From Dendrobates tinctorius (taxonomy: Eukaryota), in NCBI RefSeq assembly GCF_039654945.1, contig NW_027361731.1, positions 558,001 to 622,000 of the forward strand: a DNA stretch of 64,000 bases, read 5' to 3'. This document shows positions 19,007 to 64,000 of the stretch, piece after piece. The number at the start of each line of letters is the position of its first letter. Within the stretch, counting starts at the first letter, position 1. The notes below the pieces were generated by a model, which did not search any database, was not told the DNA's origin, and saw only the letters and a list, made by a program, of their open reading frames with translations. A program made the position numbers and the translations under genes.

Positions 19007-19379
19007 ATTGTACTTTCTCATTTCTCATGTTTGTTCTCTTTAAAATAAAAACACTCATACTCTCCTTCCTTGCCGGTGCTGATCCATTGATGTTGCAATT
19101 TGCGTTCCCACATTTCTTATCAAAGGTCTCATCTTTCCACTCTGGTGACATTTCTGCCTCAGCTTGGAAAAAGTAGCACTCTTAGCCCTCATAATGCAAG
19201 ACAGCTCAAGCCTATCAGTCCTGCAATTTCTCCTTTCTTAATGTCGGTCGCACAAGAAAACAGCTCCACAAATCTCCTTGTGTTCTCCCTGAAGCCCACA
19301 TACTGAGCAATGTTTGCATCACAGGGGAATTTACCTCCCCTCCTCCCAAGCTACAGGGGATTCTGATATGGGAACACCA

Positions 19380-20990
19380 TAATTGGTTTGTATATCATAT
19401 TGCGTCAATCCCTACTAAACAAGACATGGAGAAACATATACAAAGTCTGAAGACCACATACAAAACTGAAATATGTTCCCTCACTTCAAGCCTGTCACAG
19501 CTTTCTGACAAGGTACAGAGATTAGAGAATGATGATGTACAAGTTTTCGACCTTGAAAATGCTCATAAACAAACACTGGGTCTTCACAGCCAGCAAATAA
19601 ACAGTCAATTTAATATGGTTGATGACCTAGAAAGTTACAATAATATCTGGATAAGGGGTATACCTGAAAGCACCAATACACAAGCGATTAAGCAAACACT
19701 GCTCACGTTATTCAAAATATCCTTTGTGATCCTATTGATAAGGAGCTGGAGATCGATAGGACGCACGATACAGTAGACCAGGGGTCTCAAACTCGACAGA
19801 GTAAATGGGCCACACATAAAAAAAAAAATTTAAGCTGACGGGCTGCATTCCATTCAAACTTAGTACAGAACAAAATCATTGTACCTCATACACACGTGGC
19901 TCCGTACACCTCGTACTCGCACATCTCCACTCCGCACACCTCATACACGCACGGCTCCTCTCCGTACCCTTCGTACACACGCGGCTCCGCTCCGTATACT
20001 TCATACACATGCGGCTCCGCTCTGTACACTTCGTACACACGCGACTCAGCTCCGTACACCTCGTACACATGCGGCTCCGCTCCGTACACCTCATACACAC
20101 ACGGCTCCTCCGTACACCTTGTACACACGGCTCCTCTCCGTACACCTCGTACACACGGCTCCTCTCTGTACACCTTATACACATGCGGCTCTGTACACCC
20201 TACTCTCCGTACACTTCATACACACGGCTGCGGTCCATACACTTCGTACACACACGGCTTTGCTCCATCCACCTTGTACACACGGCTCTGCTACACCCAC
20301 CCTGTAAACCCCTCCTGACCCCACACATAAACTTACCCTCATCCACCAGCATGACAACCAGCACAGACAGCTGCTTCCTACATACACTGAGGCCCCTGAT
20401 CATGTGATGTCTGACTCCTCCCCTCCTGTGACCTCATCCCAGGTCCTGTGCACACAGAACAGCCATCGCGCGCTCCTGAATGTGCACCTTCCACCTTCTA
20501 CCTGCCTCAGGGAGTGAGAAATGTGCACTGCGGGCCGCGTGATTGAGACCTCTGTACTAGACAATCATGGATCAGATTCTGAGAGTCCAATAGACATTAT
20601 CTATCACATTTTTTCAATGTAAATGAGCCTATTATGAGGAAAACAAGAGAGTTGGATCTTGTTGATTTCAATGTAAAACACATAAATTGCTCACAGATCC
20701 TTTCTGAATGATACTTTCTAAAAGAACGGTATTGAAACCACTGCTTAATACCCTCCAGGAAAATGGCCTGATGTACTCCTCAGGCTTCACATTCCAGCTG
20801 TATATTTTCAAACATCCAAGCGACACGAGAACATTCTGTGATGCCCTGGACATTCCCAGAATCCATACATCTGACTGGCCACTTGCTCCGCCATTGCCAC
20901 AGAGAGTTCCAGCACATTGTAGAAGACTTCCAATTGTTCAGGAACTTGATGGTGATGCACCCAGATGGGAAAGGAACCTGCCAATCATAT
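19380..20990 (+). mobile_element. L1-clade ORF1 remnant, interrupted by a hAT MITE
   Basis: Coiled coil, then NNIWIRGIPES...ELEIDRTH, and after the insertion SKRTVLKPLLNTLQENGLMYSSGFTFQL, matching L1 ORF1p RRM/CTD motifs. Confidence 0.8.
19779..20554. mobile_element. Non-autonomous hAT (Charlie-like) element with an internal ~30-bp minisatellite (19880-20300)
   Basis: TIRs CAGGGGTCTCAA / TTGAGACCTCTG; 8-bp TSD CAGTAGAC/TACTAGAC (6/8); internal unit ~CGTACACCTCGTACACACGCGGCTCCGCTC. Confidence 0.8.
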
Positions 20991-26314: not shown

Positions 26315-28860
26315 GGGGGTTTCCACTGTTTGGGCACATCAGGGGCTCTCCAAATGCAACATGGCGTCTGATTTCAATTCCAGCCAATTCTGAGTTGAAA
26401 AAGTCAAATGGTGCTCCTTCCCTTCCAAGCTCTGACATGCGCCCAAACAGTGTTTTACCCCCACATGTAGGGTATCAGCCTACTCAGGACAAATTGCAAA
26501 ACAATTTTTGGGGTCCAATTTCTCCTGTTACCCATAGGAAAATAAAAAATTGGGGGCAAAAATATCATTTTTGTGGAAAAAAATTATTTTTTTATTTTCA
26601 CGTCCAAGCGTTATAAACTTCTGTGAAGCACTTGGGGGTTCAAAGTGCTCACCACACATCTAGATAAGTTCCGTGGGGGGTCTAGTGTCCAAAATGGGGT
26701 CACTTGTGGGGAGTTTCAATAGTTTAGGTACATCAGGGGCTCTCCAAACGCACATGACACCCGCAGACCATTCCATCAAAGTCTGCATTCCAAAATGTCA
26801 CTGCTTCCCTTCCGAGCCCCGACGTGTGTCCATACAGTAGTTTTCTCCCACATATGGGGTGTCAGCGTACTCAGGCCAAATTGGACAACAACCTTTGGGG
26901 TTCAATTTCTCCTGTTATCCTTGGGAAAATAAAAAAATTGGGGACTAATTGATCATGTTTGTGGAAAAAATACGATTTTTTTATTTTCATGCCCGAGCAT
27001 TATAAACTTCTGTGAAGCCCTTGGGGGTTCAAAGTGCTCACCACACATCTAGATAAGTTCCTTAGGGGGACTAGTTTTCAAAATGGGGTCATTTGTGGGG
27101 GGTTTCCACTGTTTAGGTACATTAGGGGCTCTCCAAAGGCAACATGACACCCGCAGACCATTCCATCAAAGTCTGCATTCCAAAACATCACTACTTCCCT
27201 TCCGAGCCCCGACGTGTGCCCATACAGTAGTTTTCTCCCACATATGGGGTATCAGTTTACTCAGGACAAATTGGACAACAACTTTTGGGGTCCAATTTCT
27301 CCTGGTACCCTTGGGAAAATAAAAAAATGGTGACTAAAATATCATGTTTGTGGAAAAAATATGATTTTTTTTATTTTCACGCCCGGGCGTTATAAACTTC
27401 TGTGAAGCACTGGGGGGTTCAAAGTGCTCACCACACATCTAGATAAGTTCCTTGGGGGTCTAGTTTACAAAATGGTGTCATTTGTGGGGGGTTTCCACTG
27501 TTTAGGTACATCAGGGGTTTTCCAATCGCAACATGGTGTCCGATTTCAATTCCAGCCAAAAACGTCAAATGGCGCTGCTTCCCTTCCGAGCTCTGCCATG
27601 CGCCCAAATAGTGGTTTACCCCCACATGTGGGGTATCAGCGTACTCAGGACAAATTGCACAATAACTTTTAGGGTCCTGTTACCCTTGGAAAAATAAGAA
27701 TTGAGGGTGAAAAGATCATTTTTGTGGAAAAAATATGATTTTTTAATTGTACGGCTTTATGTTATAAACTTCTGTGAAGCCCTTGGGGGTTCAAAGTTCT
27801 CACCACACATCTAGATAAGTTCCTTAGGGGGTCTAGTTTCCAAAATGGTGTCATTTGTGGGGGGTTTCCACTGTTTTGGTACATCAGGGGTTTTCCAATC
27901 GCAACATGATGTCCGATCTCAATTCCAGCCAAAAACGTCAAATGGCGCTGCTTCCCTTCCGAGCTCTGCCATGCGCCCAAATAGTGGTTTACCCCCACAT
28001 GTGGGGTATCAGCGTACTCAGGACAAATTGCACAATAACTTTTAGGGTCCTGTTACCCTTGGAAAAATAAGAATTGAGGGTGAAAAGATCATTTTTGTGG
28101 AAAAAATATGATTTTTTAATTGTACGGCTTTATGTTATAAACTTCTGTGAAGCCCTTGGGGGTTCAAAGTTCTCACCACACATCTAGATAAGTTCCTTAG
28201 GGGGTCTAGTTTCCAAAATGGTGTCATTTGTGGGGGGTTTCCACTGTTTTGGTACATCAGGGGTTTTCCAATCGCGACATGATGTCCGATCTCAATTCCA
28301 GCCAAAAACGTCAAATGGCGCTGCTTCCCTTCCGAGCTCTGCCATGCACCCAAATAGTGGTTTACCCCCACATGTGGGGTATCAGCGTACTCAGGACAAA
28401 TTGCACAATAACTTTTAGGTTCCTGTTACCCTTGGGAAAATAAAAATTGGGGTGAAAAGGTCATTTTTGTGGAAAAAATATGATTTTTTAATTGTACCGC
28501 TGTACGTTATGAACTTCTGTAAAGCCCTTGTGGGTTCAAAGTTCTCACCACATATCTACATAAGTTCCTTGGGGGGGTCTAGTTTCCAAAATGGGGTCAC
28601 TTGTAGGGGGTTTCCACTGTTTAGGTACATCAGGGACTCTCCAAACGTGACATGGCGTCCGATCTGAATTCCAGACAATTTTGCATTGAAAAAGTCAAAC
28701 GGCGCTCCTTCCATTCTGAGCTCTGCCATGCGCCGAAACAGTCGTTCCCCCCCCCACATATCAGGTATCAGCGTACTCAGGACAAATTGCACAATAACTT
28801 TTGCAGTCCAATTTCTCCTGTTACCCTTGGTAAAATAAAAAAAATTGAACCTGAAGTATT
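26315..28860. repeat. ~373-390-bp tandem repeat (~6-7 units) inside the piggyBac-type element
   Basis: Identical ORFs recur at offset 373 (27762/28135; 27845/28218); recurring motif CTCACCACACATCTAGATAAGTTCC. Confidence 0.92.
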
Positions 28861-33222: not shown

Positions 33223-36200
33223 TAACATAGTAACATAGTAACATAGTTATTAAGGTTGAAGGGAGACTTTAAGTCCATCTAGTTCAACCCATATCCTATC
33301 CTAACTTGCCCTAACATGTTGATCCAGAGGAAGGCAAAAAAAACCCCATGTGGCAAACAGTAAGCTTCACATTGGGGAAAAAAATTCCTTCCCGACTCCA
33401 CATACGGCAATCAGACTAGCTCCCTGGATCAACGCAATATTAAGGAAACTAGTGTATATACCCTGTAATATTATACTTTTCAAGAAAGGCATCCAGTCCC
33501 TTCTTAAATTTTAGTAGGGAATCACTCATTACAACATCATATGGCAGAGAGTTCCATAGTCTCACTGCTCTTACAGTAAAGAATCCACGTCTGTGAGTAT
33601 GCTTAAACCTTCTCTCCTCCAGACGTAGAGGATGCCCCCTTGTCCCCATCACAGGTCTAAGAGTAAAAAGATCATTAGAAAGCTCTTGGTATTGTCGCCG
33701 CATATATTTATACATTGTAATAAGATCACCCCTAAGCCTTCGATTCTCCAAACTAAATAACCCCAAAGCCCCTTGCGGTAGCGACACGCGTCGGGCACGT
33801 CCACAGGCTCCCCCTTGTTTGGGTATAGTATGCTGTTTTAGCATCTAGTGCATATTGTATGCACTCTTTGGGAGGTTACTTATTGGGCTCTGAATGTATT
33901 ATTTCAGGGCACAAACATATGTTCTTATTTATTATTTTTTCCTCCATACCATGTCCTTCTCTGATTTAGGGGGTTGTTTTGACATCTGGTGCATGCTTTA
34001 GCACATTTGCATTTTCATGGTTTTGGTCCCATAGTGCATTTTTCAATGTTTCATAAATTACTGTGATATTGTTAATACATTAATGCACTGTGTATATTTT
34101 TAGCGAGCATAGTGGTTTTTGTTTGATAGTGCTCCAATTGGGTTCTCTAATATCTGTTTAATTGTACCAGATGCTTGATATAACATGGTCCATTTATCAG
34201 CTTCTATCATTACCTCAGATGAGAGGGGAGTCTGTTAGGGTTATATTATTAACCCATAATGGTTTAATTGTCATTTTGTGACTTTTTAAATGTTTTTATA
34301 TTGTCCATTTGTCTGAGTGATTCAATAAAATTTACATGTTGAGTTTTGATAGAGGTGATCCCAGTTCTTGGTCAGTATCTTTCTCTCTTCTTTTTCAAAT
34401 AACCCCAAATGTAATAACCTGTCTTGGTATTGCAGACCCCCTAGTTCCCTAATAACCTTGGTCGCTCTTCTCTGCACCCGCTCCAGTTCAGCTATGTCTT
34501 TCTTATACACCGGAGACCAGAACTGTACACAGTATTCTAAGTGTGGTCGCACTAGTGACTTATATAGAGGTAAAATTATGTTCTCCTCATGAGCATCTAT
34601 GCCTCTTTTAATGCATCCCATTATTTTATTTGCCTTTGCAGCAGCTGCCTGACACTGGCCGCTAAATGTGAGTTTGTCGTCCACCCATACACCCAGGTCT
34701 TTTTCAGTGACTGTTTTGCCCAGTGTTTTACAATTAAGCACATAATTATACATCGTGTTCGTTCTACCCAAGTGCATGACCTTACATTTATCCCCATTAA
34801 AGCTCATTTGCCATTTATCAGCCCAAGCTTCTAGTTTACATAAATCCTCCTGTAATATAAAATTGTCCTCCTCTGTATTGATTACCCTGCAGAGTTTAGT
34901 GTCATCTGCAAATATTGAAATTCTACTCTCTATGCCCCCTACAAGGTCATTAATAAATATGTTAAAAAGAAGCGGGCCCAAAACTGACCCCTGTGGTACC
35001 CCACTGCTAACCGTGACCCAGTCCGAGTGTGCTCCATTAATAATCACCCTTTGTTTCCTATCCCTGAGCCATCTCTTAACCCACCTACACATATTTTCCC
35101 CTATCCCCATTGTTCTCATTTTATGTATCAACCTTTTGTGTGGCACCGTATCAAAAGCTTTTGAAAAGTCCATGTACACCACGTCCACTGCATTCCCTTG
35201 GTCCAGTCCGGAACTTACCTCTTCATAAAAGCTTATCAGATTAGTCTGACAGGAACGGTCCCTTGTAAACCCATGTTGATATTGGGTCATGAGGTTATTC
35301 TTCTCCAGATACTCCAGTATAGTATCTCTTAGGAAACCCTCCAGGATCTTACCCACAGTTGAGGTTAAACTTACTGGCCTATAATTTCCAAGTTCAGTTT
35401 TTGTCCCCTTTTTGAATATTGGCACCACATTTGCTATACGCCAGTCCTGTGGTACAGACCCTGTTATTATGGAATCCTTAAAGATTAAAAATAATGGTCT
35501 ATCTATGACTGTACTTAATTCCTGCAGTACTCGGGGGTGTATCCCATCCGGGCCCGGGGATTTGTCAATTTTAGTGATTTTTAGACGCCGCCGTACTTCC
35601 TGCTGGGTTAAGCAGGTGACATTTAATGGAGAATTTTTATCCCTGATCATGTTATCCGTCATGGGATTTTCTTGTGTAAATACTGCTGAAAAAAAGTCAT
35701 TTAGCATATTGGCTTTTTCCTCATCCTCCTCCACCATTTCACCCAGACTATTTTTAAGGGGGCCAACACTATCATTTTTTAGTTTCTTACTATTTATGTA
35801 GTTAAAGAATATTTTGGGATTATTTTTACTTTTTCTGGCAATGAGTCTCTCTGTCTCAATCTTTGCTGTCTTGATTTGCTTTTTACAGAATTTATTTAAT
35901 CTTCTGTATTTAGTTAATGCCTCATCACTACCTACTTGCTTTAATTCTCTAAATGCTTTATGTTTGTCCCTTATTGTGCCCCTTACAGCTCTATTTAGCC
36001 ATAGTGGTTTCTTCCTATTTCTCGCATGTTTATTCCCATACGGTATATATTGGGCACAGCTCCTATTCAGGATGCTAATAAACGTCTCCCATTTTCTTTG
36101 TGTATTTTTATGTCTCAGGATATCGTCCCAGTTAATTGCACCAAGATCATCTCTCATCCGTTGGAAATTTGCTTTCCTGAAGTTTAGTGTCCTTGTAACC

Positions 36201-38062
36201 CCTCTACTACACATCTTATTAAAGGATACATGAAAACTTATTAATCTGTGATCACTATTACCCAAGTGACCCCCAACCCTTACATTTGATATGCGGTCTG
36301 GCCTGTTGGTTAATATTAGGTCTAGCAGTGCCCCCCCCCTCTTGTTGGGTCCTGAACCAGTTGTGAAAGGTAATTGTCTCTCATAGTAGTCAAAAACCTA
36401 TTACCTTTGCTGGAACTGCAGATTTCGGTTCCCCAATGTATTTCAGGGTAGTTGAAGTCCCCCATAATAATGACTTCTCCTTGAGTCGCAGCTTCATCTA
36501 TTTGCTTTATGAGGATATTCTCTGTTGCTTCCATTATTTTTGGAGACTTATAACAAACCCCTATCAGTAATTTATTATTTTTCCCCCCTCCCCTTATCTC
36601 TACCCACAGGGACTCTACATTTTAATTAGATTCATATATATTATCACGAAGGATGGGTTTTAAGGATGATTTTACATATAAACACACACCTCCCCCTCGC
36701 TTATTTGTACGGTCATTTCTGAACAGACTATAGCCCTGTAAATTAACTGCCCAGTCATGGCTCTCGTCCAGCCATGTCTCAGATATCCCCACCATGTCAT
36801 AATTATGTTCCAACAACATTAACTCCAATTCCTCCATCTTGTTGGCGAGACTTCTGGCATTAGTATACATGCACTTTATGTATCTCTCTGTACCTCTATT
36901 CTTTCTTAAATTATTAACTGTTCTAACCCCACCCCCCGTGCCTTCCCCACCCCCAATTTCATTATTTGTGCCCAGGTCTCTAACTGCACTGTTTTCCCCT
37001 CCTATAAAAGGAATACCCTCCCCCCCCCGTCCCTAGTTTAAACACTCCTCCAACCTTCTAGCCATTTTCTCCCCCAGCACAGCTGCACCCTCCCCATTGA
37101 GGTGCAACCCGTCCCTAGCGTAGAACCTGTAGCCAACTGAGAAGTCAGCCCAGTTCTGCAGGAACCCAAACCCCTCCTTCCTACACCAATTCCTGAGCCA
37201 CTTATTAACCTCCCTAATCTCCCGTTGCCTCTCTGGCGTGGCACGTGGTACAGGAAGTATTTCCGAAAATACCACCTTGGAGGTCCTTGCTTTAAGCTTA
37301 CAGCCTAATTCCCTGAAATCATCTTTAAGGACCTTCCACCTACCTCTAACTTTGTCATTTGTGCCAATGTGCACCATGACCGCTGGATCCTCACCAGCCC
37401 CTCCCAGTAATCTGTCAACCAGATCAGCGATGTGTCGGACTCGAGCGCCAGGTAGGCAGCACACCGTTCGACGATCCCTGTCTTTGTGACAGATTGCCCT
37501 ATCTGTTCCCCTAATAATTGAGTCTCCCACTACCAGAACCTGTCTAGCCTGCCCTGCTCTCCTATTTCCCCCCTTACTGGAGCAGACACTCCTCCGGCTT
37601 TCAGAGGACATGCCTTGCTGCAGCGGTGCTACTCCTGCACTAACACTCCCCTCATCTGCCAACTTAGCAAACTTATTGGGGTGTGCCAGATCAGGACTAG
37701 CCTCCCTGGTGCTCTTCCCTCTACCCCGCCTTCTAACTGTCACCCAGCTAGCTGCTTCATTGTCCTGCAGCTCCAACCTAGCATCCCCCCCTCATCTATC
37801 ATTGAGAGTCTGCTCAGTGAGCAGAAGACTCCTTTCCATATTGTCTATGGATCTCAGTGTTGCCAGCTGCACATTTAGATCCAGTATCTGGGCTTCCAAA
37901 TGCACAACGTGCTCACATCTCACACAGCAGTATGCACCCTCGACCGGCTGTTCAAGGATTTCATACATGCGGCAAGACGTGCACTGGATGGCATTGGCAA
38001 TAGTGGAGCACATCCTAATGGGGATTGCACCAGACAATAAGATAAGCAGAAATAAATTTAAA
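33223..38062 (-). mobile_element. Near full-length CR1 LINE
   Basis: 3' (ACTATGTT)n octamer tail. ORF2 has an APE endonuclease (MYTNARSL, GDFNYP, SDH) and RT (PGPDGIHPRVL, GVPQGSVLGP, FADD) at ~36900-33449 with two frameshifts. ORF1 has a CxxC zinc finger/coiled coil and an SGNH esterase (VVGDSII, HIGTND, DGLHLN) at ~38010-37033. AAAGT on both flanks. Confidence 0.95.
33768..34396 (+). mobile_element. 629-bp insertion in CR1 ORF2, probably a Penelope-like terminal repeat
   Basis: Exact 13-bp TSD AAATAACCCCAAA (33755-33767 / 34397-34409). Begins with the 3' half of a hammerhead-like motif (GCGACACGCGTCGGG); AT-rich body with AATAAA near the end. Confidence 0.65.
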
Positions 38063-42437: not shown

Positions 42438-43532
42438 GGCTGGTTTCACATTTGCGTTTTTTTTTCGCGGTAATTTAGCACTAAATAGCGCATGCGTTTT
42501 TTTTTCCTATACTTTGCATGGGATGCGCTTATGTGCGCATACACATGCGTTTGTACGCGTTTTACCGCGCATGCGTTTTTTTGCGGTATGCGCTCGGGCG
42601 CACAAAATGCAACCTGTTGCATTTTTTGTGCGTCCGATTTGCCTCAAAAAACGCATGCGCGCGCAATGCGTTTTTTTTACAGCAAGACACCCAATATAAG
42701 TCTATGGGTGCGCATATGTGCGCATTGGCATGCTTATGTATGCGTTTTTTTGCACATGCGTTTTTTTTTGTTAACCATGGAATTTAGGGGTTTGGGTTAG
42801 AGTTAGGGTTAGTTAAGGGGGTTTAGGGTTAGGGTTAGGGTCAGGGTCAGGGTTGGGGTTAGGGTCAGGGTCAGGGTTAGTTAGGGTTTAGGGTTTGGGT
42901 TAGGGTTAGGGTTAANNNNNNNNNNNNNNNNNNNNNNNNNNNNNNNNNNNNNNNNNNNNNNNNNNNNNNNNNNNNNNNNNNNNNNNNNNNNNNNNNNNNN
43001 NNNNNNNNNNNNNNNNNNNNNNNNNNNNNNNNNNNNNNNNNNNNNNNNNNNNNNNNNNNNNNNNNNNNNNNNNNNNNNNNNNNNNNNNNNNNNNNNNNNN
43101 NNNNNNNNNNNNNNNNNNNNNNNNNNNNNNNNNNNNNNNNNNNNNNNNNNNNNNNNNNNNAAGGTTTAGGGTCAGGGTTAGGGTTAGGGTTAAGGTTAGT
43201 TAGGGTTTGGGTTAGGGTTAAGTATGGTTTGGTTAAGGGTTAGGGTCAGGGTTAGGGTTAGGGTCAGGGTTAGGGTTAGGGTCAGGGTTAGGGTTAGTAA
43301 AGTCATGGTTTGGGTTAGTGTGAGGGGCCACCTAATGTTGGAAAAAACCGCAAACGCGGTAAAAACGCACTAAAAACGCATACAAACGCATAAAAACGCT
43401 GCGTTTTTTTCATGCATGCTCATAAAAATGCTTGAAAAAAACGCAGCAGTTGTATGCTTTTGTATGCGTTTTTTCAATGCGTTTTTTTGCGGGAAAAACG
43501 CGCTGCAAAAAAAAGCAAGTGTGAAACTAGCC
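42438..43532. mobile_element. Harbinger-type MITE with a central telomere-like array spanning the assembly gap
   Basis: TIRs GGCTGGTTTCACATTTGC / GCAAGTGTGAAACTAGCC; TGA TSD; degenerate (TTAGGG)n at ~42783-43318. Confidence 0.82.
42916..43160. other. Assembly gap (245 N)
   Basis: Run of N between TTAGGG-like repeats. Confidence 1.
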
Positions 43533-44317: not shown

Positions 44318-44693
44318 GGAAATGTTTGCCAGCCCATACACTTAGTGTATGGGCATTACAAGTCTAGGAGACCCGCTCCTTTACATTGGGCATAGTGTTT
44401 AATTAGGCCTTCCTCCGCGTGTCATCATCCACTGCCACTAGATGACCAGGGTTAACGTGTTCCGTGCTGCTACAGCCAGTGTCGAATTCCTAACAAGGGT
44501 GGGTGGTTATGCTGAGCATAAAATACTTGTTATGGAAAAGGTTGAGGTGTACCCCACTGGAGAAAATGTTTGCCAACCCATACATTAAGTGTATGGGCAT
44601 TCCAAGTCGAGGAGACCCGCTCCTTTGCAATTTGTCATTTTTTTCATGAGGCCCTCCTCCATGTTTCTTCCAAAGGGTGATTGGGGTTATTGG

Positions 44694-47600
44694 TGATACG
44701 GCGGCGGAGCACACTTAAAAAAATATAAATAAACGTGTTCGCCGCCCGGGGTCCACTGTGCGGCAGATGGAAAAACCGCAGCTAGAAGACACAGAGCACT
44801 GTGGCGGTAATGTGCACGGGGTTCTATATCACCCAGGTGCAGTCAAGCAGTCTCTGTTAAGTGCACAGAGCTGCTACAAGAAAAATAGCAAAGTAACGCT
44901 GAGCCTGTTAGTAACACAGGAACTCAGCGACACACATGCGGTAGGCAAAAACCAGAGTAGTTAAAACGTCACCACATCCGACACCTACCGTAGTAACAAG
45001 TGTGCTGGCGTCGCAACCGCGGACGCACAAATAAGCTGCAACTGCAGCGCGGCGTGAACAGAGCCACAAGCAAGGCGCTGCAAGGACGCTGGCGCAATGC
45101 AGGATGCTTAGCTGCTGCACAAGGTATGGCTGGAGCGCGCTGGCGCTAGCGCTGCTACTGGCGGCTGCCCAATCACTCACTCAATCGTAATGTCAGAGGG
45201 AAGGGGTTTCATAATAAGTCATCCACCTGTCCAAGCATACAAAACCATACACACAGCAGCAGTATGAAAATACTAGCGCATGGCGGAACAGCCATGCGCA
45301 CTTTTTATAGTGTACGGGACCTTCCGGAAGTCTCCATAACCCTGAGCTGGACCAATGGAATCAGGAGCAGGACCTGAGCACCTGACTCCTGAACTCCAAT
45401 GGGAGGTTGTCCCAGGAGCATGCTCAGAGTATGGGGTGAAGGACTTAGCCTCCGGAGAGAGTTGCTGAAAAGCAAACTCTTCTGCAATCTCTCCTGCAGT
45501 GGACGGATAGCAGGAGACTGCAGGATGTAAGGGTCTAGATCTCTGCATAGCCAGGGCAGAAATCTGACTCCTAACATTACCCCCCCTCCTAGGGCCCCCC
45601 TCCATGAACCTTCCGATCCGCCAGCCTGTGCCTGACAGTGGCACAGGCCTCAGACTCGTCAAAAGGCGAGTCTGAAGTGCCGGTAGGTGAAACCGAAAAC
45701 CGGGATATACGGATGGAATCAGCGGAGGCCAGGTCGCCAGGTCTCAGGAGGGACACCCGGGAGATAATGGGAGTGGGAGTTTTAGTAGGACGCCGCCGTG
45801 TATCGACGGCCGTCGCCACACTCCATTCGGGAAAGCTATCCCGGGCACATAAAGTGCATGCCCGAATGAATTTTTTTACGTCCCGAGCCCTGTGCGGCCA
45901 CCAATACGATCCGGCCAGAGACTTCATGGTCTGCATATAGCCACGGTGGTCGTCCGCATTAGGTGTGTGTGCCCACGCGAGAATTTTAGGCCGCTGGCGA
46001 GGGGGAACAAAAGTCTCGCCTACCGACTCACACTCAGACCATTGCGGGGGGCTGTCTTCCTGGGAAGCAGCATGTAGGTGGTGGCAACCGCATATGGACC
46101 CGTGAGCCGGAGGTGTCTCTGAAATGGTACGAGACACTTCCATGGGCTCGGGAGGTAGAACCTCTGGCTCGGGCAGCTCCAGAGGCACAAAAAGGTTGGG
46201 AGCCGGGGTACCTCTCCGCTTGGAGTCAGCTCGCTCCATACCGCGCTCCGAAAAACGGAGATCGATACGGGAGGAGATAGAAATTAGCTCCTCCAGAGAG
46301 GTAGGGATCTCTCTAGTGGAGAGAGCATCCTTAACATGCCCCGCTAATCCTCTCCAAAAAACAGGGATCAGTGCCTTGTCGGACCACTCCAACTCGGATG
46401 CCAGTGTCCGAAAACGGACGGCGTACTGGCTAACCGAGAGAGACCCCTGAGACAAGGCAAGCAACTGTAGAGAGGTGTCATGGGTGACCCGGGGACTGAG
46501 AAAAACTTGCCTGATGGCTGTCAGCAAGTGGGCAGCGGTCCGAATCTCGGGATCCCCCCACTCCCATAAAGGCGTAGCCCATTCCAGCGCCTTGCCAGAC
46601 AGTAAGGATATAATAAAGGCCACCTTGGCCCGTTCTGTAGGGAATTGCGCAGCCAGCAGCTCCAGGTGGATCGAGCACTGGCTGATAAACCCCCTGCAGG
46701 AGGCGCCATCCCCAGAATATTTATCGGGCAACGGGAGACGGGTAACTGTCGGCGCAAGGGTGGACATGGACATCCACGCGACCGCATCAGTAAGTGCCTT
46801 TACAGCAGCATCCGTGGCCTGCGAAGCTGCGAGAGCTCTCTCAAGGGTGGTCAAGCGAGTCTCGAGCTGTCGCACACACTGGAGGAGTTGCTGCTATTCT
46901 GTCATCTCTAGCCAGACCCTGGCGCTAGTATTATGTTACGGCGGCGGAACATGCTTAAAAAATATAAATAAACGTGTTCGCCGCCCGGGGTCCACCGTGC
47001 GGCAGATGGAAAAACCGCAGCTAGAAGACACAGAGCATTGTGGCGGTAATGTGCATGGGGTTCTATATCACCCAGGTGCAGTCAAGCAGTCTCTGTTAAG
47101 TGCACAGAGCTGCTACAAGAAAAATAGCAAAGTAACGCTGAGCCTGTTAGTAACACAGGGACTCAGCGACACACATGCGGTAGGCAAATACCGGAGTAGT
47201 TAAAATGTCACTACATCCGACACCTACCGTAGTAACAAGTGTGCTGGCGTCACAACCGCGGACACACAAATAAGCTGCAACTGCAGCGCGGCGTGACCAG
47301 AGCTGCAAGCAAGGCGCTGCAAGGACGCTGGCGCAATGCAGGACGCTTAGCTGCTGCACAAGGTATGGCTGGAGCGCGCTGGCGCTAGCGCTGCTACTGG
47401 CGGCTGCCCAATCACTCACTCAATCGTAATGTCAGAGAGAAGGGGTTTCATAATAAGTCATCCACCTGTCCAAGCATACAAAACCATACACACAGCAGCA
47501 GTATGAAAATACTAGCGCATGGCGGAACAACCATGCGCACTTTTTATAGTGTACGGGACCTTCCGGAAGGCTCCATAACCCTGAGTTGGACGAATGGAAT

Positions 47601-47813
47601 CAGGAGCAGGACCTGAGCACCTGACTCCTGAACTCCAATGGGAGGTTGTCCCAGGAGCATGCTCAGAGTATGGGGTGAAAGACAGCCTCCGGAGAGAGTT
47701 GCTGAAAAGCAAACTCTTCTGCAATCTCTCCTGCAGTGGACGGATAGCAGGAGACTGCAGGATGTAAGGGTCTAGATCTCTGCATAGCCAGGGCAGAAAT
47801 CTAACTCCTAACA
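44694..47813 (-). mobile_element. Compact non-autonomous LTR retrotransposon (3.1 kb) encoding only a Gag + integrase-H2C2 fusion
   Basis: Highly similar LTRs at 46934-47813 and 44694-45576; exact TSD ATTGG; PPT GGGGGGCCCTAGGAGGGGGG; 1357-bp interior filled by one ORF. Confidence 0.95.
45589..46905 (-). CDS. Sushi/PEG10-like Gag fused to an integrase zinc-binding (H2C2) domain; TAG at codon 4 in this copy
   Basis: LPLPDKYSGDGASCRGFISQC...AKVAFIISLLSGKALEWATPLWE...[14 protein letters not shown]; FVPPRQRPKILAWAH...HRG...YWWPHRARDVKKFIRACTLCAR. Start reads ATG ACA GAA TAG CAG, then open to the stop at 45589. Confidence 0.8.
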
Positions 47814-49086
47814 ATTGGGGTGCATATGACTTGGAAGCAGGGCAGGCCTTGCAGTCAATGCATAAGAAAACAGAATGGGTGTACAAAATTAATAATGTGA
47901 AGTACCTGGTTTCAAATTGTTAGGCTGGTTTCACATTTGCGTCTGTTTGCGCAGAGTTTCATCTGCAGCAATCCTTGTGCATCATATTTCCCTATCTTTA
48001 ACATGGTGTATGCAGGGGCATGCGTTTGCATTAGTTCGCATGCATCAGCGTATGTATGGGTTGTTTTTCGGTGTGCGTCGGGGTCCGGTGAACGCATCAT
48101 GTTGGATTTTTGGAAGCGGCAAAAATCCGTCAAATATGCGCAGTCATGTGCATGCTGATTTGTGCGTCAAAAAATGCATTACTGTCTATGGGAATGCATG
48201 CATACACAAGGAAATGCATACACACATGCGTTCTATATGCATGCATTTTTTTAATTAGTTGGTCCAGGAAGTGATTCAACCACCTGATAATTGAGAGCTC
48301 TATAAATAGAAGTGTGGACACAGCAAGGCCATAACTCTTTGGACTCTGGACGATACCACAACACTCGCTATGTAAGTATAGAACCTTAGAAAATGTCATC
48401 CTCCCTCACTGCTGTTTGCACTTTGTATTACATTTTTTTTCTGTTTACTTTTAGACGTGTCGAGTGGCCTGGTACAGTGGTTGTCTCCTGGTGCAGCGGG
48501 TTTCTCCAGTTCCTTTCCTGGTGCTGCTTTCTGTCGTGGTGAGGACAACACTATGTAAGAACAGAAACTTTGGAAATGTCTGTCTCTCTGAATGCTTTTT
48601 CTGTTCCTTGTAGACTAGCTGATTCTATCTGGCGCAGTGGGTGTTTCCTGGTGCAGTGGTTTTCTCCATTTCATTTCCTGGTGCTGCTTTCTGTCGTGGT
48701 GAGGACAACACTGTCACGCCCCCGGATGAAGCTAAAGGGCGAAACGGGCATTGGGGCGAGGGGGACACCATCGGACCACCAACACTTGTTTATGATCAAC
48801 TGAATTCAGGTAAAATACCTTGACTGGATATGTATTTAGCGATACTTTCTATATAGGACTACCAGCTCCACCTAAGGATTAAGGCTTCCTCTTTTTGATT
48901 CCTTTGGAAAATATATGGATTGCCATTAGATAAATAAGTACATCTGGATTCTTCCCAGGGTCGTCGGGCTCATGTGTCTCAGGAGGAAAGACGGGGTGTA
49001 AGTATTCCTTTCATCAGAGTTGTAATACAATTTTTTTTCAGTTTTACTTAAAATTCTTTTTTTCTATTTTATCCATAGGTTTCACA

Positions 49087-51494: not shown

Positions 51495-52339
51495 TGTTAG
51501 GAACGGCAGAACGCACTAATTAAAATAAATAATAAAGTGCGTTCGCCACTCGGGGTCCACCGTGCAGAAGGTGTTATAACTGCTGCTAAGTAATGGTAGA
51601 CGTGCTATATGGCGGTATAATGTGCACGGGGTTAAACGTCACCCAGATGCGCAGAGCAATCACTGTTTAATCACAGAGATGCCAGTAAGGGAAAACACAA
51701 AAAGGCTGAGCCTGTTAGCGTCACAGGTCTCAGATATATGCACACACGGTATCAGGTCACAGATGCAGGACCCAAGGCAGAAGGAACTGCGTCCGTCTAG
51801 ACCTACCGTGTGTGCGGTGTCACTACAGCAGGCGCCAGAGAGAGCTGCAACTGCAGCGCGGCGTAGGACACTGCCATGAGACGATAGTGCCGTGAGGAGT
51901 AGCACAAGCGGACGCTAGTGGAGAGGCGCGATGTGCACAGTGGCCTAAGAAGTGCCACTGACTGGCGCTGACTGCTGAACTAATTCCCTATCCACATGCA
52001 TAATATCAGGAAAGGGGTTTCAAATGAGTCAGTCACCAGAATCATATATCCGTCACCGTTCACACATCTAGCAAGTAATGTCTATACTAGCGCATGGTCG
52101 AACAGCCATGCGGCCCTTTTATAGCCGTGCGCTGCCGGGACCTTCCAGATCTCTGAGATGGACCAATGAGATCAGGAGAAGGACCTGAGCACGTGAATCC
52201 CGACCTACAATGGGAGATCGTCTCATGAGCATGCTCAGAGGAGCGGCAGAGGGACTTAGCCTCAGGAGTAACTTGCTGCGATACAGTATGTGAGGCTCTG
52301 GACTCCTGCTGTGTAGCCGCAGGAATCCGACGCCTAACA
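51495..52339 (-). mobile_element. Solo LTR related to the 44694-47813 LTRs
   Basis: TGTTAGG...CCTAACA termini; GTCTCC duplicated on both sides; shares GTTCGCC..GGGGTCCACCGTGC and ATACTAGCGCATGG...TTTTATAG motifs. Confidence 0.88.
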
Positions 52340-57689: not shown

Positions 57690-57884
57690 TAGAAAAGGCG
57701 GCGCGGGGTAATTGTGCCAGTAGTGAGGGGGAATAATGGCGGGAAGGTCACTGACTGAGGAGAAGTCTCCATGTCTGCACTCCGGAGATCATGTGACCCC
57801 TGACTCCTCCCCTCCTGTGACCTCATCACAGGTCCTGTGCGCACAGAGCAGCCATATATGTGGAGTGCAGCTGTGCAGGTTAGT
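57690..57884 (+). promoter_or_regulatory. Putative promoter/first non-coding exon of a further (ZNF-type) gene
   Basis: GC-rich; CATGTGAC and TGTGACCTCATCAC motifs; ends GCAG|GTTAGT (donor-like); 57857-57880 matches the satellite unit upstream of the ZNF gene at 22/24. Confidence 0.45.
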
Positions 57885-60800
57885 GATGGGCAGTCTGGGG
57901 CTTCTTGCTCCTTTCCCCTCTTTTCTCCCTCCTGTCCCTTCACTATAAAGCCTGGGCCTCATTATACAGCTGTACAGGGGTCTAGTGATGGGCAGTCCGG
58001 CTCTTCTTGCTCCTTTCCCCTCTTTTCTCCCTCCAGTCCCTTCACTATAAAGCCTGGGCCTCATTATACAGCTGTACAGGGGTCTAGTGATGTGCAGTCC
58101 GGTTCTTCTTGCTCCTTTACCCTCTTTTCTCCCTCCAGTTCCTTCACTATAAAGCCTGGGCCTCATTATACAGCTGTATGGGGTCTAGTGATGGGCAGTC
58201 CGGCTCTTCTTGCTCTTTCCCCTCTTTTCTCCCTCCAGTCCCTTCACTATAAAGCCTGGGCCTCATTATACAGCTGTACAGGGGTCTAGTGATGGGCAGT
58301 CCAGCTCTTCTTGCTCCTTTCCCCTCTTTTCTCCCTCCTGTCCCTTCACTATAAAGCCTGGGCCTCATTATACAGCTGTACAGGGGTCTAGTGATGGGCA
58401 GTCCGGCTCTTCTTGCTACTTTCCCCTCTTTTCTCTCTCCAGTCCCTTCACTATAAAGCCTGGGCCTCATTATACAGCTGCACAGGGGTCTAGTGATGGG
58501 CAGCCCGGCTATTCTTGCTCCTTTCCCTCTTTTCTCCCTCCAGTCCCTACACTATAAAGCCTGGGCCTCATTATACAGCTGTACAGGGGTCTAGTGATGG
58601 GCAGTCCGGCTCTTCTTGCTCCTTTCCCCTCTTTTCTCCCTCCTGTCTCTTCACTATAAAGCCTGGGCCTCATTATACAGCTGTACAGGGCTCTAGTGGT
58701 GGGCAGTCTGGCTCTTCTTGCTACTTTCCCCTCTTTTCTCCCTCCAGTCCCTTCACTATAAAGCCTGGGCCTCATTATACAGCTGTACAGGGGTCTAGTG
58801 ATGTGCAGTCCGGCTCTTCTTGCTCCTTTCCCCTCTTTTCTCCCTCCAGTCCCTTCACTATAAAGCCTGGGCCTCATTATACAGCTGTACAGGGGTCTAG
58901 TGATGGGCAGTCCGGCTCTTCTTGCTCCTTTCCCCTCTTTTCTCCCTCCAGTCCCTTCACTATAAAGCCTGGGCCTCATTATACAGCTGTACAGGGGTCT
59001 AGTGATGGGCAGTCCGGCTCTTCTTGCTCCTTTTCCCTCTTTTCTCCCTCCAGTCCCTTCACTATGAAGCCTGGGCCTCATTATACAGCTGTACAGGGGT
59101 CTAGTGATGGGCAGTCCAGCTCTTCTTGTTCCTTTCCCCTCTTTTCTCCCTCCTGTCCCTTCACTATAAAGCCTGGGCCTCATTATACAGCTGTACAGGG
59201 GTCTAGTGATGGGCAGTCCGGCTCTTCTTGCTCCTTTCCCCTCTTTTCTCTCTCCAGTCCCTTCACTATAAAGCCTGGGCCTCATTATACAGCTGTACAG
59301 GGGTCTAGTGATGGGCAGTCCAGCTCTTCTTGCTCCTTTCCCCTCTTTTCTCCCTCCTGTCCCTTCACTATAAAGCCTGGGCCTCATTATACAGCTGTAC
59401 AGGGGTCTAGTGATGGGCAGTCCGGCTCTTCTTGCTCCTTTCCCCTCTTTTCTCCCTCCAGTCCCTTCACTATGAAGCCTGGGCCTCATTATACAGCTGT
59501 ACAGGGGTCTAGTGATGTGCAGTCCGGTTCTTCTTGCTCCTTTACCCTCTTTTCTCCCTCCAGTTCCTTCACTATAAAGCCTGGGCCTCATTATACAGCT
59601 GTACAGGGGTCTAGTGATGGGCAGTCCGGCTCTTCTTGCTCCTTTCCCCTCTTTTCTCCCTCCTGTCTCTTCACTATAAAGCCTGGGCCTCATTATACAG
59701 CTGTACAGGGCTCTAGTGGTGGGCAGTCTGGCTCTTCTTGCTACTTTCCCCTCTTTTCTCCCTCCAGTCCCTTCACTATAAAGCCTGGGCCTCATTATAC
59801 AGCTGTACAGGGGTCTAGTGATGTGCAGTCCGGCTCTTCTTGCTCCTTTCCCCTCTTTTCTCCCTCCAGTCCCTTCACTATAAAGCCTGGGCCTCATTAT
59901 ACAGCTGTACAGGGGTCTAGTGATGGGCAGTCCGGCTCTTCTTGCTCCTTTCCCCTCTTTTCTCCCTCCAGTCCCTTCACTATAAAGCCTGGGCCTCATT
60001 ATACAGCTGTACAGGGGTCTAGTGATGGGCAGTCCGGCTCTTCTTGCTCCTTTTCCCTCTTTTCTCCCTCCAGTCCCTTCACTATGAAGCCTGGGCCTCA
60101 TTATACAGCTGTACAGGGGTCTAGTGATGGGCAGTCCAGCTCTTCTTGTTCCTTTCCCCTCTTTTCTCCCTCCTGTCCCTTCACTATAAAGCCTGGGCCT
60201 CATTATACAGCTGTACAGGGGTCTAGTGATGGGCAGTCCGGCTCTTCTTGCTCCTTTCCCCTCTTTTCTCTCTCCAGTCCCTTCACTATAAAGCCTGGGC
60301 CTCATTATACAGCTGTACAGGGGTCTAGTGATGGGCAGTCCAGCTCTTCTTGCTCCTTTCCCCTCTTTTCTCCCTCCTGTCCCTTCACTATAAAGCCTGG
60401 GCCTCATTATACAGCTGTACAGGGGTCTAGTGATGGGCAGTCCGGCTCTTCTTGCTCCTTTCCCCTCTTTTCTCCCTCCAGTCCCTTCACTATGAAGCCT
60501 GGGCCTCATTATACAGCTGTACAGGGGTCTAGTGATGTGCAGTCCGGTTCTTCTTGCTCCTTTACCCTCTTTTCTCCCTCCAGTTCCTTCACTATAAAGC
60601 CTGGGCCTCATTATACAGCTGTATGGGGTCTAGTGATGGGCAGTCCGGCTCTTCTTGCTCTTTCCCCTCTTTTCTCCCTCCAGTCCCTTCACTATGAAGC
60701 CTGGGCCTCATTATACAGCTGTACAGGGGTCTAGTGATGTGCAGTCCGGCTCTTCTTGCTACTTTCCCCTCTTTTCTCTCTCCAGTCCCTTCACTATAAA

Positions 60801-63800
60801 GCCTGGGCCTCATTATACAGCTGCACAGGGGTCTAGTGATGGGCAGCCCGGCTATTCTTGCTCCTTTCCCTCTTTTCTCCCTCCAGTCCCTACACTATAA
60901 AGCCTGGGCCTCATTATACAGCTGTACAGGGGTCTAGTGATGGGCAGTCCGGCTCTTCTTGCTCCTTTCCCCTCTTTTCTCCCTCCTGTCTCTTCACTAT
61001 AAAGCCTGGGCCTCATTATACAGCTGTACAGGGCTCTAGTGGTGGGCAGTCTGGCTCTTCTTGCTACTTTCCCCTCTTTTCTCCCTCCAGTCCCTTCACT
61101 ATAAAGCCTGGGCCTCATTATACAGCTGTACAGGGGTCTAGTGATGTGCAGTCCGGCTCTTCTTGCTCCTTTCCCCTCTTTTCTCCCTCCAGTCCCTTCA
61201 CTATAAAGCCTGGGCCTCATTATACAGCTGTACAGGGGTCTAGTGATGGGCAGTCCGGCTCTTCTTGCTCCTTTCCCCTCTTTTCTCCCTCCAGTCCCTT
61301 CACTATAAAGCCTGGGCCTCATTATACAGCTGTACAGGGGTCTAGTGATGGGCAGTCCGGCTCTTCTTGCTCCTTTTCCCTCTTTTCTCCCTCCAGTCCC
61401 TTCACTATGAAGCCTGGGCCTCATTATACAGCTGTACAGGGGTCTAGTGATGGGCAGTCCAGCTCTTCTTGTTCCTTTCCCCTCTTTTCTCCCTCCTGTC
61501 CCTTCACTATAAAGCCTGGGCCTCATTATACAGCTGTACAGGGGTCTAGTGATGGGCAGTCCGGCTCTTCTTGCTCCTTTCCCCTCTTTTCTCTCTCCAG
61601 TCCCTTCACTATAAAGCCTGGGCCTCATTATACAGCTGTACAGGGGTCTAGTGATGGGCAGTCCAGCTCTTCTTGTTCCTTTCCCCTCTTTTCTCCCTCC
61701 AGTCCGTTCACTATAAAGCCTGGGCCTCATTATACAGCTGTACAGGGGTCTAGTGATGAGCAGTCCGGCTCTTCTTGCTCCTTTCCCCTCTTTTCTCTCT
61801 CCAGTCCCTTCACTATAAAGCCTGGGCCTCATTATACAGCTGTACAGGGGTCTAGTGATGGGCAGTCCGGCTCTTCTTGCTCCTTTCCCCTCTTTTCTCT
61901 CTCCAGTCCCTTCACTATAAAGCCTGGGCCTCATTATACAGCTGAACAGGGGTCTAGTTATGGGCAGTCCGGCTCTTCTTGCTCCTTTCCCCTCTTTTCT
62001 CTCTCCAGTCCCTTCACTATAAAGCCTGGGCCTCATTATACAGCTGTACAGGGGTCTAGTGATGGGCAGTCCGGCTCTTCTTGCTCCTTTTCCCTCTTTT
62101 CTCCCTCCAGTCCCTTCACTATGAAGCCTGGGCCTCATTATACAGCTGTACAGGGGTCTAGTGATGGGCAGTCCAGCTCTTCTTGTTCCTTTCCCCTCTT
62201 TTCTCCCTCCTGTCCCTTCACTATAAAGCCTGGGCCTCATTATACAGCTGTACAGGGGTCTAGTGATGGGCAGTCCGGCTCTTCTTGCTCCTTTCCCCTC
62301 TTTTCTCTCTCCAGTCCCTTCACTATAAAGCCTGGGCCTCATTATACAGCTGTACAGGGGTCTAGTGATGGGCAGTCCGGCTCTTGTTGCTCCTTTTCCC
62401 TCTTTTCTCCCTCCAGTCCCTTCACTATGAAGCCTGGGCCTCATTATACAGCTGTGCAGGGGTCTAGTGATGGGCAGTCCAGCTCTTCTTGTTCCTTTCC
62501 CCTCTTTTCTCCCTCCAGTCCGTTCACTATAAAGCCTGGGGCTCATTATACAGCTGTACAGGGGTCTAGTGATGGGCAGTCCGGCTCTTCTTGCTCCTTT
62601 CCCCTCTTTTCTCTCTCCAGTCCCTTCACTATAAAGCCTGGGCCTCATTATACAGCTGTACAGGGGTCTAGTGATGGGCAGTCCAGCTCTTCTTGTTCCT
62701 TTCCCCTCTTTTCTCCCTCCAGTCCGTTCACTATAAAGCCTGGGCCTCATTATACAGCTGTACAGGGGTCTAGTGATGAGCAGTCCGGCTCTTCTTGCTC
62801 CTTTCCCCTCTTTTCTCTCTCCAGTCCCTTCACTATAAAGCCTGGGCCTCATTATACAGCTGTACAGGGGTCTAGTGATGGGCAGTCCGGCTCTTCTTGC
62901 TCCTTTCCCCTCTTTTCTCTCTCCAGTCCCTTCACTATAAAGCCTGGGCCTCATTATACAGCTGTACAGGGGTCTAGTTATGGGCAGTCCGGCTCTTCTT
63001 GCTCCTTTCCCCTCTTTTCTCTCTCCAGTCCCTTCACTATAAAGCCTGGGCCTCATTATACAGCTGTACAGGGGTCTAGTGATGGGCAGTCCGGCTCTTC
63101 TTGCTCCTTTTCCCTCTTTTCTCCCTCCAGTCCCTTCACTATGAAGCCTGGGCCTCATTATACAGCTGTACAGGGGTCTAGTGATGGGCAGTCCAGCTCT
63201 TCTTGTTCCTTTCCCCTCTTTTCTCCCTCCTGTCCCTTCACTATAAAGCCTGGGCCTCATTATACAGCTGTACAGGGGTCTAGTGATGGGCAGTCCGGCT
63301 CTTCTTGCTCCTTTCCCCTCTTTTCTCTCTCCAGTCCCTTCACTATAAAGCCTGGGCCTCATTATACAGCTGTACAGGGGTCTAGTGATGGGCAGTCCGG
63401 CTCTTCTTGCTCCTTTCCCCTCTTTTCTCTCTCCAGTCCCTTCACTATAAAGCCTGGGCCTCATTATACAGCTGTACAGGGGTCTAGTGATGGGCAGTCC
63501 AGCTCTTCTTGTTCCTTTTCCCTCTTTTCTCCCTCCAGTCCGGTCACTATAAAGCCTGGGCCTCATTATACAGCTGTACAGGGGTCTAGTGATGAGCAGT
63601 CCGGCTCTTCTTGCTCCTTTCCCCTCTTTTCTCTCTCCAGTCCCTTCACTATAAAGCCTGGGCCTCATTATACAGCTGTACAGGGGTCTAGTGATGGGCA
63701 GTCCGGCTCTTCTTGCTCCTTTCCCCTCTTTTCTCTCTCCAGTCCCTTCACTATAAAACCTGGGCCTCATTATACAGCTGTACAGGGGTCTAGTTATGGG

Positions 63801-64000
63801 CAGTCCGGCTCTTGTTGCTCCTTTCCCCTCTTTTCTCCCTCCAGTCCCTTCACTATAAAGCCTGGGCCTCATTATACAGCTGTACAGGGGTCTAGTGATG
63901 GGCAGTCCGGCTCTTCTTGCTCCTTTTCCCTCTTTTCTCCCTCCAGTCCCTTCACTATGAAGCCTGGGCCTCATTATACAGCTGTACAGGGGTCTAGTGA
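57870..64000. repeat. 102-bp satellite, ~60 units, with 1020-bp higher-order duplications; runs off the right edge
   Basis: Unit CTAGTGATGGGCAGTCCGGCTCTTCTTGCTCCTTTCCCCTCTTTTCTCCCTCCAGTCCCTTCACTATAAAGCCTGGGCCTCATTATACAGCTGTACAGGGGT; variant patterns recur at 58561/59581 and 61561/62581. Confidence 0.98.

Follow-up and report, generated by a model that had tools for sequence, protein, structure and literature searches.

What is to be made of a long terminal repeat (LTR) retrotransposon that is complete in its outer parts and encodes a capsid joined to a piece of integrase, with none of the enzymes by which such elements are copied? It could be the remnant of a single full-length insertion or a member of a family that spreads in this form. 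The question is raised by a 3120-bp element on the minus strand of a 64,000-nt stretch of the genome of the frog Dendrobates tinctorius (contig NW_027361731.1, positions 558,001 to 622,000; this whole stretch is termed the window below). The analysis makes it probable that this element belongs to a non-autonomous Ty3/gypsy family of a Tf1/sushi-like chromodomain lineage, which arose from an autonomous element by in-frame deletions and has been propagated since it was shortened.

Self-comparison of the window revealed two direct repeats about 2.24 kb apart, which are the LTRs of the element. Their alignment shows 25 substitutions and 3 gap columns (identity 96.8%; Kimura two-parameter (K2P) distance 0.029), and both start with TGTTAGG and end with CA. 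These paired TG..CA repeats, a target-site duplication (TSD), a primer-binding site (PBS) and a polypurine tract (PPT) make up the structural signature of an LTR retrotransposon, and the window holds one full copy of this element. The interior measures 1357 nt, and 1317 nt of this (97%) are taken up by a single open reading frame (ORF), with its ATG at 46905 and its TAG at 45589, which runs in one frame from the gag start codon through the native pol stop codon. No frameshift separates it from the intact D. tinctorius copy described below as L001. A preliminary description, made from the letters of the window, had reported near-identical LTRs with a 5-bp TSD, PPT and primer site, a single ORF filling the interior and joining a capsid in frame to the integrase H2C2 domain, and a stop at codon 4 as the only visible lesion. 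Each of these observations holds: the LTRs are 880 and 883 bp long, the TSD is CCAAT, Pfam recovers both parts of the fusion, and comparison with L001 leaves the codon-4 stop as the sole defect. Moderately young as an insertion, the window copy has already been inactivated, with this stop in its ORF.

Pfam searches with the ORF product identified Retrotrans_gag (1.4e-10), Ty3_capsid (1.3e-08), DUF4939/RTL1-8_LDOC (2.7e-08) and Integrase_H2C2 (1.7e-12), including the Retrotrans_gag/DUF4939 and Integrase_H2C2 domains that had been predicted, and the same scan found no protease, reverse transcriptase (RT), RNase H or integrase core (rve), the very set that had been listed as missing. An AlphaFold2 model computed from a 17-row alignment predicts, with a predicted local distance difference test (pLDDT) score of about 90 or above, a long N-terminal helix (residues 2-41), the capsid as eight helices (63-226) and the H2C2 domain (about 290-355); disorder is predicted for the linker (245-287) and for the C-terminal 80 residues. 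Foldseek matched the modelled capsid to the C-terminal domain of the PEG10 capsid (CA-CTD; template-modelling (TM) score 0.92), to the Ty3 capsid 6r24 (TM 0.68) and to dArc capsids, and sequence searches of PDB recovered PEG10 CA-CTD (7lga, E 7e-08), the PFV integrase N-terminal domain (E 9e-04) and, more weakly, Ty3 Gag-Pol. As modelled, the capsid is complete, two-lobed and of the Ty3/PEG10 type, in agreement with its earlier designation as sushi-type, for which the DUF4939 and Ty3_capsid hits and the structural match to PEG10 CA-CTD speak. The H2C2 ligands (H309, H316, C346 and C349) are invariant in all three copies of the element that we collected, and the ligand set of the nucleocapsid CCHC knuckle is incomplete in the window copy and both its sisters. 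The tail retains the pieces ADTxRRP, VSLLRP and SRFS..GTS..DE.E and the first residues (about 14) of a chromodomain.

The copy set comprises the window element and two sisters, all from D. tinctorius. A word-based protein search found the 438-aa protein XP_073425377.1 (P0001), annotated as a protein in RefSeq, which covers 100% of the query at 69% identity and shows the same four Pfam domains. Its locus (L001; JAYMGB010000027.1 5613-8114) is an LTR element of about 2.9 kb, lying antisense within a large VWA-repeat gene. The ORF of L001 is fully intact (438 codons, 1317 nt). Its 5' LTR lacks the first ~415 bp, U3 and TATA box included, and the two LTRs have diverged to a K2P of 0.068 with 3 indels in 360 bp, with no indel in the ORF. 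As an old copy with an open ORF, L001 is possibly a case of early exaptation. The second sister was reached via P0183, a longer isoform of P0002, the D. tinctorius MFAP2 isoform X2, which opens with 216 residues that correspond to the C-terminal half of the element protein. This MFAP2 locus (L006; JAYMGB010000010.1 8001-26406) contains a complete 2932-bp element at 16508-19439, which sits inside a tandem-repeat array and has LTRs 98.6% identical and its own 5-bp target duplication (GGTGG). Its ORF has lost 6 nt in frame at each of two places and a further 2 nt near codon 141, which shifts the frame, and it has gained 2 nt immediately ahead of the stop codon; the reading frame is broken in two of the three copies. 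The RefSeq MFAP2 isoforms X1 and X2 start in the element ORF, cross its 3' LTR and splice into MFAP2 exons; these models represent a chimeric transcript driven by the LTR or else an artefact of annotation. P0184, which belongs to the P0002 cluster and comes from Logan, was set aside as plain MFAP2 rather than the element.

The window copy, L001 and L006 lie at different loci with different flanks and share the gag-H2C2 join, the H2C2-tail join and a stop in the PPT region; their C-terminal 190 residues align free of gaps at 56-58% identity. At least three independent insertions of different ages therefore share the deleted structure. The preliminary description had named a structure unique to this copy as the outcome that would speak against a family, and the identical junctions in L001 and L006 show that it is not unique. 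The ORFs of the window copy and L001, both 1317 nt long, are 76% identical (about 24% DNA difference) with zero indels, whereas the LTRs among the copies are 69-80% identical with more than 100 gap columns. Because the LTRs of the same copies provide an internal control full of indels, the indel-free ORFs indicate that the frame has been protected.

We computed dN/dS, the ratio of nonsynonymous to synonymous divergence, by the Nei-Gojobori method, pairwise between the three copies and for each region, with bootstrap 95% confidence intervals (CIs); here and in the Gag tree the L006 ORF was read through with X at its breaks. The ratio is 0.23-0.27 for the whole ORF (95% CIs 0.17-0.35), 0.09-0.12 for the capsid, 0.14-0.20 for H2C2 (upper CI ≤0.47), 0.29-0.46 for the linker and 0.50-0.70 for the tail, and the differences at codon positions 1, 2 and 3 number 89, 59 and 166. 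The low nonsynonymous divergence of H2C2 goes with a dS of 1.0-1.6; it is therefore the protein, and not a nucleotide signal, that has been conserved. The changes unique to each copy show a pN/pS of 0.18-0.26, and the branch pS (0.08-0.12) is several times as large as half the divergence between the LTRs of that copy (0.005-0.034), from which it follows that most of the divergence predates each insertion. The divergence was thus mostly built up in replicating lineages that already bore the deleted structure, and the capsid and H2C2 have been under purifying selection after the deletions. In the Gag tree all three minimal copies group in a single clade (SH-aLRT 94), which is sister to autonomous copies from the frog Ranitomeya imitator (97), with both together in a frog-specific group (100). 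The earlier suggestion of a non-autonomous family under selection is borne out by these ratios and by the joins that L001 and L006 share with the window copy.

The nearest relatives of the window protein are all from dendrobatid frogs. An exhaustive HMMER search yielded a sole close long relative, the 1405-aa R. imitator protein P0035, which is 60% identical in Gag and has RT, RNase H, H2C2, rve and chromodomain. A further search found P0185, whose locus (L009; R. imitator CAUEEQ010013400.1 2637-8556) is an apparently intact, young element of 5.9 kb with LTRs 98% identical and the TSD ATGTG, equal in length to the duplications of the minimal copies. Analysed as two unspliced ORFs, both open, L009 encodes gag-protease in 547 aa and, in the -1 frame, pol in 957 aa; pol is likewise in the -1 frame relative to gag in L002 and L004. 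The order protease, RT, RNase H and integrase with a C-terminal chromodomain is present in L009, L005 (also from R. imitator) and L004, and not in the minimal element. The minimal and autonomous lineages have in common, nearly to the base, the U5 end (GCGTTCCGCC...TAACA), a block just past the LTR (ATACTAGCGCCAGG(G/A)TCTGGC), and the U3 start (TGTTAGGAGTCG) together with the PPT. The PBS of L009 differs from that of the minimal element by 1 nt, and its PPT and U3 start are alike; the PPT is the same in the window copy, L006 and L005, one G shorter in L001, and has a longer G run in L009. The autonomous partner with similar LTRs that had been postulated was thus found in part: the relative has the same PBS, PPT and LTR tips, but it comes from another species and its LTR interiors have diverged.

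The minimal family was mapped onto L009 and L005 for its retained and missing blocks. The former are gag as far as the knuckle extends, some 70 codons from the N-terminal domain of integrase, short segments of its C-terminal region along with the start of the chromodomain, and the last few codons with the stop and the PPT. The latter are about 1.95 kb that includes the frameshift site and encodes protease, RT and RNase H; about 0.64 kb with the core of integrase; the greater part of the SH3 domain (about 0.17 kb); and about 0.11 kb of the chromodomain. The exact join at the SH3 domain is ambiguous, with VSLLRP and PGDL overlapping in the window copy such that both cannot be colinear with the reference. 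By this mapping three, and probably four, internal deletions, all in frame, have merged two reading frames into one. The two large in-frame deletions of the preliminary description hence stand as to frame but not as to number.

Several other candidates were rejected. Two fish proteins were considered as independent Gag-H2C2 fusions: the Salvelinus alpinus protein P0013 is a 589-aa model spliced over 5.3 kb, approximately the interior span of a full-length element, and is probably an annotation artefact, and the Menidia menidia protein P0114 is Gag only. The two lend no support to a recurrence of the fusion outside frogs. The 1822-aa axolotl protein P0036 is a tandem array of gag fragments with an unrelated architecture.

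The primer site of the element is complementary over 11 nt to GCGCTAGTATT, which starts 30 nt past TATAAAA. The reverse complement of the primer site, GCGCTAGTAT, is found about 30 nt 3' of a TATA-type box in every LTR of the minimal family and its autonomous relatives. This self-primer motif is kept in the window copy, L006, L005, L009 and a solo LTR of the window, with 1 mismatch in the old copy L001; the box reads TATAAAA in the window copy, L006, L001 and the solo LTR, and has the variant form TATATAAA in L009. The wider PBS block (ATACTAGCGCCAGGGTCTGGC) is 1 nt off those of L005 and L009, and a centroid RNA fold of the R-U5-PBS region pairs the self-primer with the PBS. A tRNA primer was rejected in favour of self-priming because the site has no tRNA match and does not start with TGG; a search of the window found no tRNA genes. 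The primer site accordingly has the appearance of a self-priming arrangement of the Tf1/sushi type, a mode that was demonstrated initially in Tf1 and has been "implicated ... from fungi to vertebrates" (PMC4600332). In the minimal element it would depend on the RT and RNase H of a helper.

Between the TATA box and the self-primer lies an inverted repeat, GCGCATGG...CCATGCGC (47541-47511, minus strand), also present in the 3' LTR and kept in the sister copies, which may be part of the priming structure. The solo LTR (51495-52338, minus strand) belongs to a sister subfamily, being 78% identical to the L001 LTR and 63% to that of the window element; it has TGTTAGG...AACA ends, the same TATA and self-primer motifs, and GGAGAC on both sides.

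These observations suggest a history in which an autonomous ancestor underwent the three or four in-frame deletions and spread in its shortened form in dendrobatid-type frogs. Because the enzymes are missing from the ORF, the protease, RT/RNase H and integrase would be supplied in trans by a partner that reads the same PBS, PPT and LTR tips. For its spread the element presumably needs the Gag-H2C2 protein that it encodes itself. Most likely this protein acts preferentially in cis, by coating or packaging the RNA of the element, in the manner of the fusion protein of the mouse intracisternal A-particle (IAP) variant IΔ1. More speculatively, the H2C2 domain might dock onto the helper integrase or provide a zinc-dependent contact with nucleic acid. 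In integrases this domain normally contacts the catalytic core of a neighbouring subunit. The second option, in which H2C2 stands in for the lost CCHC knuckle, is weakened because the autonomous L009 also lacks a canonical knuckle.

A bolder proposal, possible though rather doubtful, is that the fusion of Gag to the integrase N-terminal domain is an evolved hijacking device: H2C2 would tether the helper integrase and the capsid would wrap the element's own RNA. If true, the parasite's cDNA would be integrated in preference to the helper's. As a side branch of the same tentative idea, L001, with its open ORF and no promoter-bearing U3, may stand at the first step toward an RTL/PEG10-like host gene.

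Certain points weigh against a family propagated with the help of such a partner. The LTR interiors have diverged from those of the autonomous relatives, with only islands alike (e.g., the TATA/start region). These relatives were found only in R. imitator, another species, at 60% identity in Gag. The CCHC knuckle is non-canonical in the apparently intact L009 as well. Only three copies were collected, and a word search for ORF fragments with the H2C2-plus-tail halves gave 3305 candidates, none of them significant.

The alternative closest to the initial question is that a full-length element landed in the window and lost pol by chance in-frame deletions after insertion. The single full copy in the window and the commonness of degraded Ty3/gypsy remains there would fit such an event. 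The same junctions, however, recur gap for gap at two other loci, one of which (L006) has its own TSD and younger LTRs; the three copies form one clade, and the different flanks contradict the notion that L001 and L006 are assembly duplicates of one locus. A one-off deletion is thus extremely improbable. It is also improbable, though less so, that the element is a passive, LARD-like passenger for which the cis signals suffice, with its signal of selection imported by recombination with co-packaged autonomous elements. Retroelement genomes do recombine during reverse transcription, the tail is weakly constrained (dN/dS 0.5-0.7), and the autonomous elements compared come from R. imitator and not from D. 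tinctorius. Against this, the frame is open across all the junctions and the tail, and the window copy and L001 do not differ there by a single indel, as opposed to their indel-rich LTRs; the Gag of the minimal family forms a clade separate from autonomous Gag; H2C2 combines low dN with very high dS; and the low pN/pS extends to all branches.

Two further explanations accept that the protein has been selected and differ as to what it does. One holds that the host has exapted Gag-H2C2, an RTL/PEG10-like neogene in the making. The ORF of L001 has remained intact despite a 5' LTR that lacks the U3 and TATA box, and free of indels next to LTRs that have accumulated them; moreover, its product is annotated in RefSeq, and L006 is built into MFAP2 gene models. 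Yet LTRs, PBS and PPT are kept in all three copies, TSDs and young LTRs in two, and the ORF is broken in two. No branch lacks the signal of selection, not even those that end in dead copies, which fits selection at the level of replication. With LTRs and TSDs in place and copies at several loci that are unrelated to one another, we do not regard the element as a domesticated RTL/PEG10-like gene, and host domestication as the source of the selection is quite improbable. The other explanation has Gag-H2C2 co-assemble with the Gag or integrase of the partner and poison it, as an interfering parasite or restriction-like factor, to the benefit of the minimal element or of the host. A full capsid and an integrase oligomerisation domain without the catalytic parts do resemble a dominant-negative design, and truncated Gag inhibitors are known from other systems. 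Nothing in the sequence separates interference from help in cis, but the family kept transposing, which requires a working helper, and we judge this reading unlikely.

Table 1. Positions of the parts of the minimal element and of the domains of its protein in the window.
Feature	Position	Strand	Basis or remark
LTR retrotransposon, 3120 bp	44694-47813	-	all parts on the minus strand
5' LTR, 880 bp, TG..CA ends	46934-47813	-	96.8% identity to the 3' LTR, K2P 0.029
3' LTR, 883 bp	44694-45576	-	self-comparison and pairwise alignment
Target-site duplication, 5' side, CCAAT on the minus strand	47814-47818	-	sequence read; equals 44689-44693
Target-site duplication, 3' side, CCAAT	44689-44693	-	sequence read
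TATAAAA box in U3 of the 5' LTR, putative promoter	47542-47548	-	same box and spacing in sister LTRs
GCGCTAGTATT, putative transcript 5' end and self-primer	47508-47518	-	complementary to the primer site
Primer-binding site AATACTAGCGC, 2 nt past the 5' LTR	46922-46932	-	motif conserved across copies
Polypurine tract AGGAGGGGGGG, 11 nt, overlapping the ORF stop codon	45580-45590	-	3 nt before the 3' LTR
Single ORF, 438 codons and stop: Gag, integrase H2C2 and tail	45589-46905	-	ORF list, Pfam
Premature stop at codon 4, sole ORF lesion	46894-46896	-	sense codon in the other two copies
N-terminal long helix, coiled-coil-like, residues 2-41 after the stop	46771-46890	-	AlphaFold pLDDT ~90; dN/dS 0.20-0.30
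Capsid N- and C-terminal lobes, residues 63-226	46216-46707	-	Pfam, PDB, Foldseek; dN/dS 0.09-0.12
Degenerate nucleocapsid CCHC knuckle remnant	46036-46095	-	aligns to the CHLCQQTGHLASRC knuckle of P0006
Junction 1 (gag to integrase)	~46030-46040	-	3' edge of the knuckle remnant; homology switches within ~2 codons
Integrase N-terminal H2C2 zinc-binding domain, residues 296-351	45841-46008	-	Pfam 1.7e-12, PDB, model
83-residue tail, integrase C-terminal leftovers to the native pol stop	45592-45840	-	dN/dS 0.50-0.70

Repeats that the window has in common with other D. tinctorius and R. imitator loci are 78-91% identical. Large satellite arrays lie at both ends of the window: one at 1-5116 has a 55-bp unit with a strong G-over-C skew and long spurious ORFs, and the other, at 57881-64000, has 60 copies of a 102-bp unit with 95% matches and runs past the window end. 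A third tandem array (26315-28843; 6.6 copies of a 373-bp unit) recurs, with 78-84% identity, where the R. imitator locus L005 ends. A degraded second Ty3/gypsy element on the plus strand includes a gag at 8810-9352, 36% identical to that of the main element, and an H2C2 remnant about 2 kb downstream (11293-11397). Further features are an open 597-aa array of about 15 C2H2 zinc fingers (16569-18362, plus strand), a KZFP-type exon that probably belongs to a host gene; the remains of a non-LTR retrotransposon (34322-37776, minus strand), with a 647-aa RT ORF followed by a GDSL-esterase-like ORF; and a run of 245 N at 42916-43160.

Gag-keeping non-autonomous LTR elements have been documented in plants, and the best animal case is that of the endogenous retrovirus IAP IΔ1. 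We found no literature description of a vertebrate Ty3/gypsy non-autonomous family that keeps its own Gag, nor of such a family with an integrase zinc domain under purifying selection, and the D. tinctorius genome paper makes no mention of non-autonomous or gag-only elements. With 438 codons and a natural intact allele in D. tinctorius, the element offers a compact natural system, suited to asking which functions a retrotransposon parasite must encode and which it can take from others, and whether the N-terminal domain of integrase can serve by itself as a recruitment module. Ty3-type elements dominate the frog genomes of the dendrobatid group (PMC11152451); therefore, such families may add to genome size. 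They also mislead gene annotation, as with the MFAP2 isoforms that start inside the element.

Of the systems with which the frog family can be compared, the TR-GAG elements (terminal-repeat retrotransposons with a GAG domain) are short LTR elements with a Gag-only ORF that are presumably mobilised by an autonomous partner. The frog element shares with them a length of less than 4 kb, LTRs, PBS, PPT, a single Gag-keeping ORF without enzymes and a presumed helper, and it likewise forms a multi-copy family, with three copies that have identical junctions. The analogy with TR-GAG elements drawn in the preliminary description is sound in these respects (size, LTRs, PBS, PPT and Gag) but fails in the retained H2C2 domain and the non-plant host. 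The TR-GAG literature found is all on plants, whereas the frog element is a vertebrate Ty3/gypsy element of the sushi/chromovirus type and is apparently self-priming. Moreover, its ORF carries a conserved Integrase_H2C2, outside a strict definition of TR-GAG as a Gag-only ORF with no pol domain; this domain is intact and under purifying selection, whereas the pol pieces of the sugar beet elements are reported to be partly decayed remnants (PMC13570524). LARD and TRIM elements resemble the frog family in the order LTR-PBS-interior-PPT-LTR and in their dependence on a helper; those elements lack conserved coding capacity, and the frog element is not one of them because its interior is, to 97%, one selected ORF.

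IAP IΔ1 likewise encodes an in-frame gag-pol fusion born of an internal deletion; it needs Gag and Pol in trans and outcompetes the full-length form, and its fusion protein acts in cis to promote retrotransposition (PMC6466679). It differs from the frog element in being an endogenous retrovirus with one 1.9-kb deletion, as against a Ty3/gypsy element with three or four. Moreover, the effect in cis is documented for IAP, whereas for the frog element it is suggested by analogy. The Tf1/sushi group (Tf1, Tj1 and sushi-ichi) is linked to the frog family by a PEG10/RTL-related capsid, by the complementarity of the PBS to the transcript 5' end known from Tf1 and Tj1 (PMC4600332), and by the chromodomain of the frog autonomous relatives; Tf1, Tj1 and sushi-ichi are autonomous, whereas the frog element is not. 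The PEG10/RTL genes, which have the same type of capsid, are LTR-less single-copy host genes, in contrast to the frog element with its LTRs and target duplications. The mammalian RTL/PEG10 genes are believed to have come from Gag-only intermediates, and the frog element is of this type.

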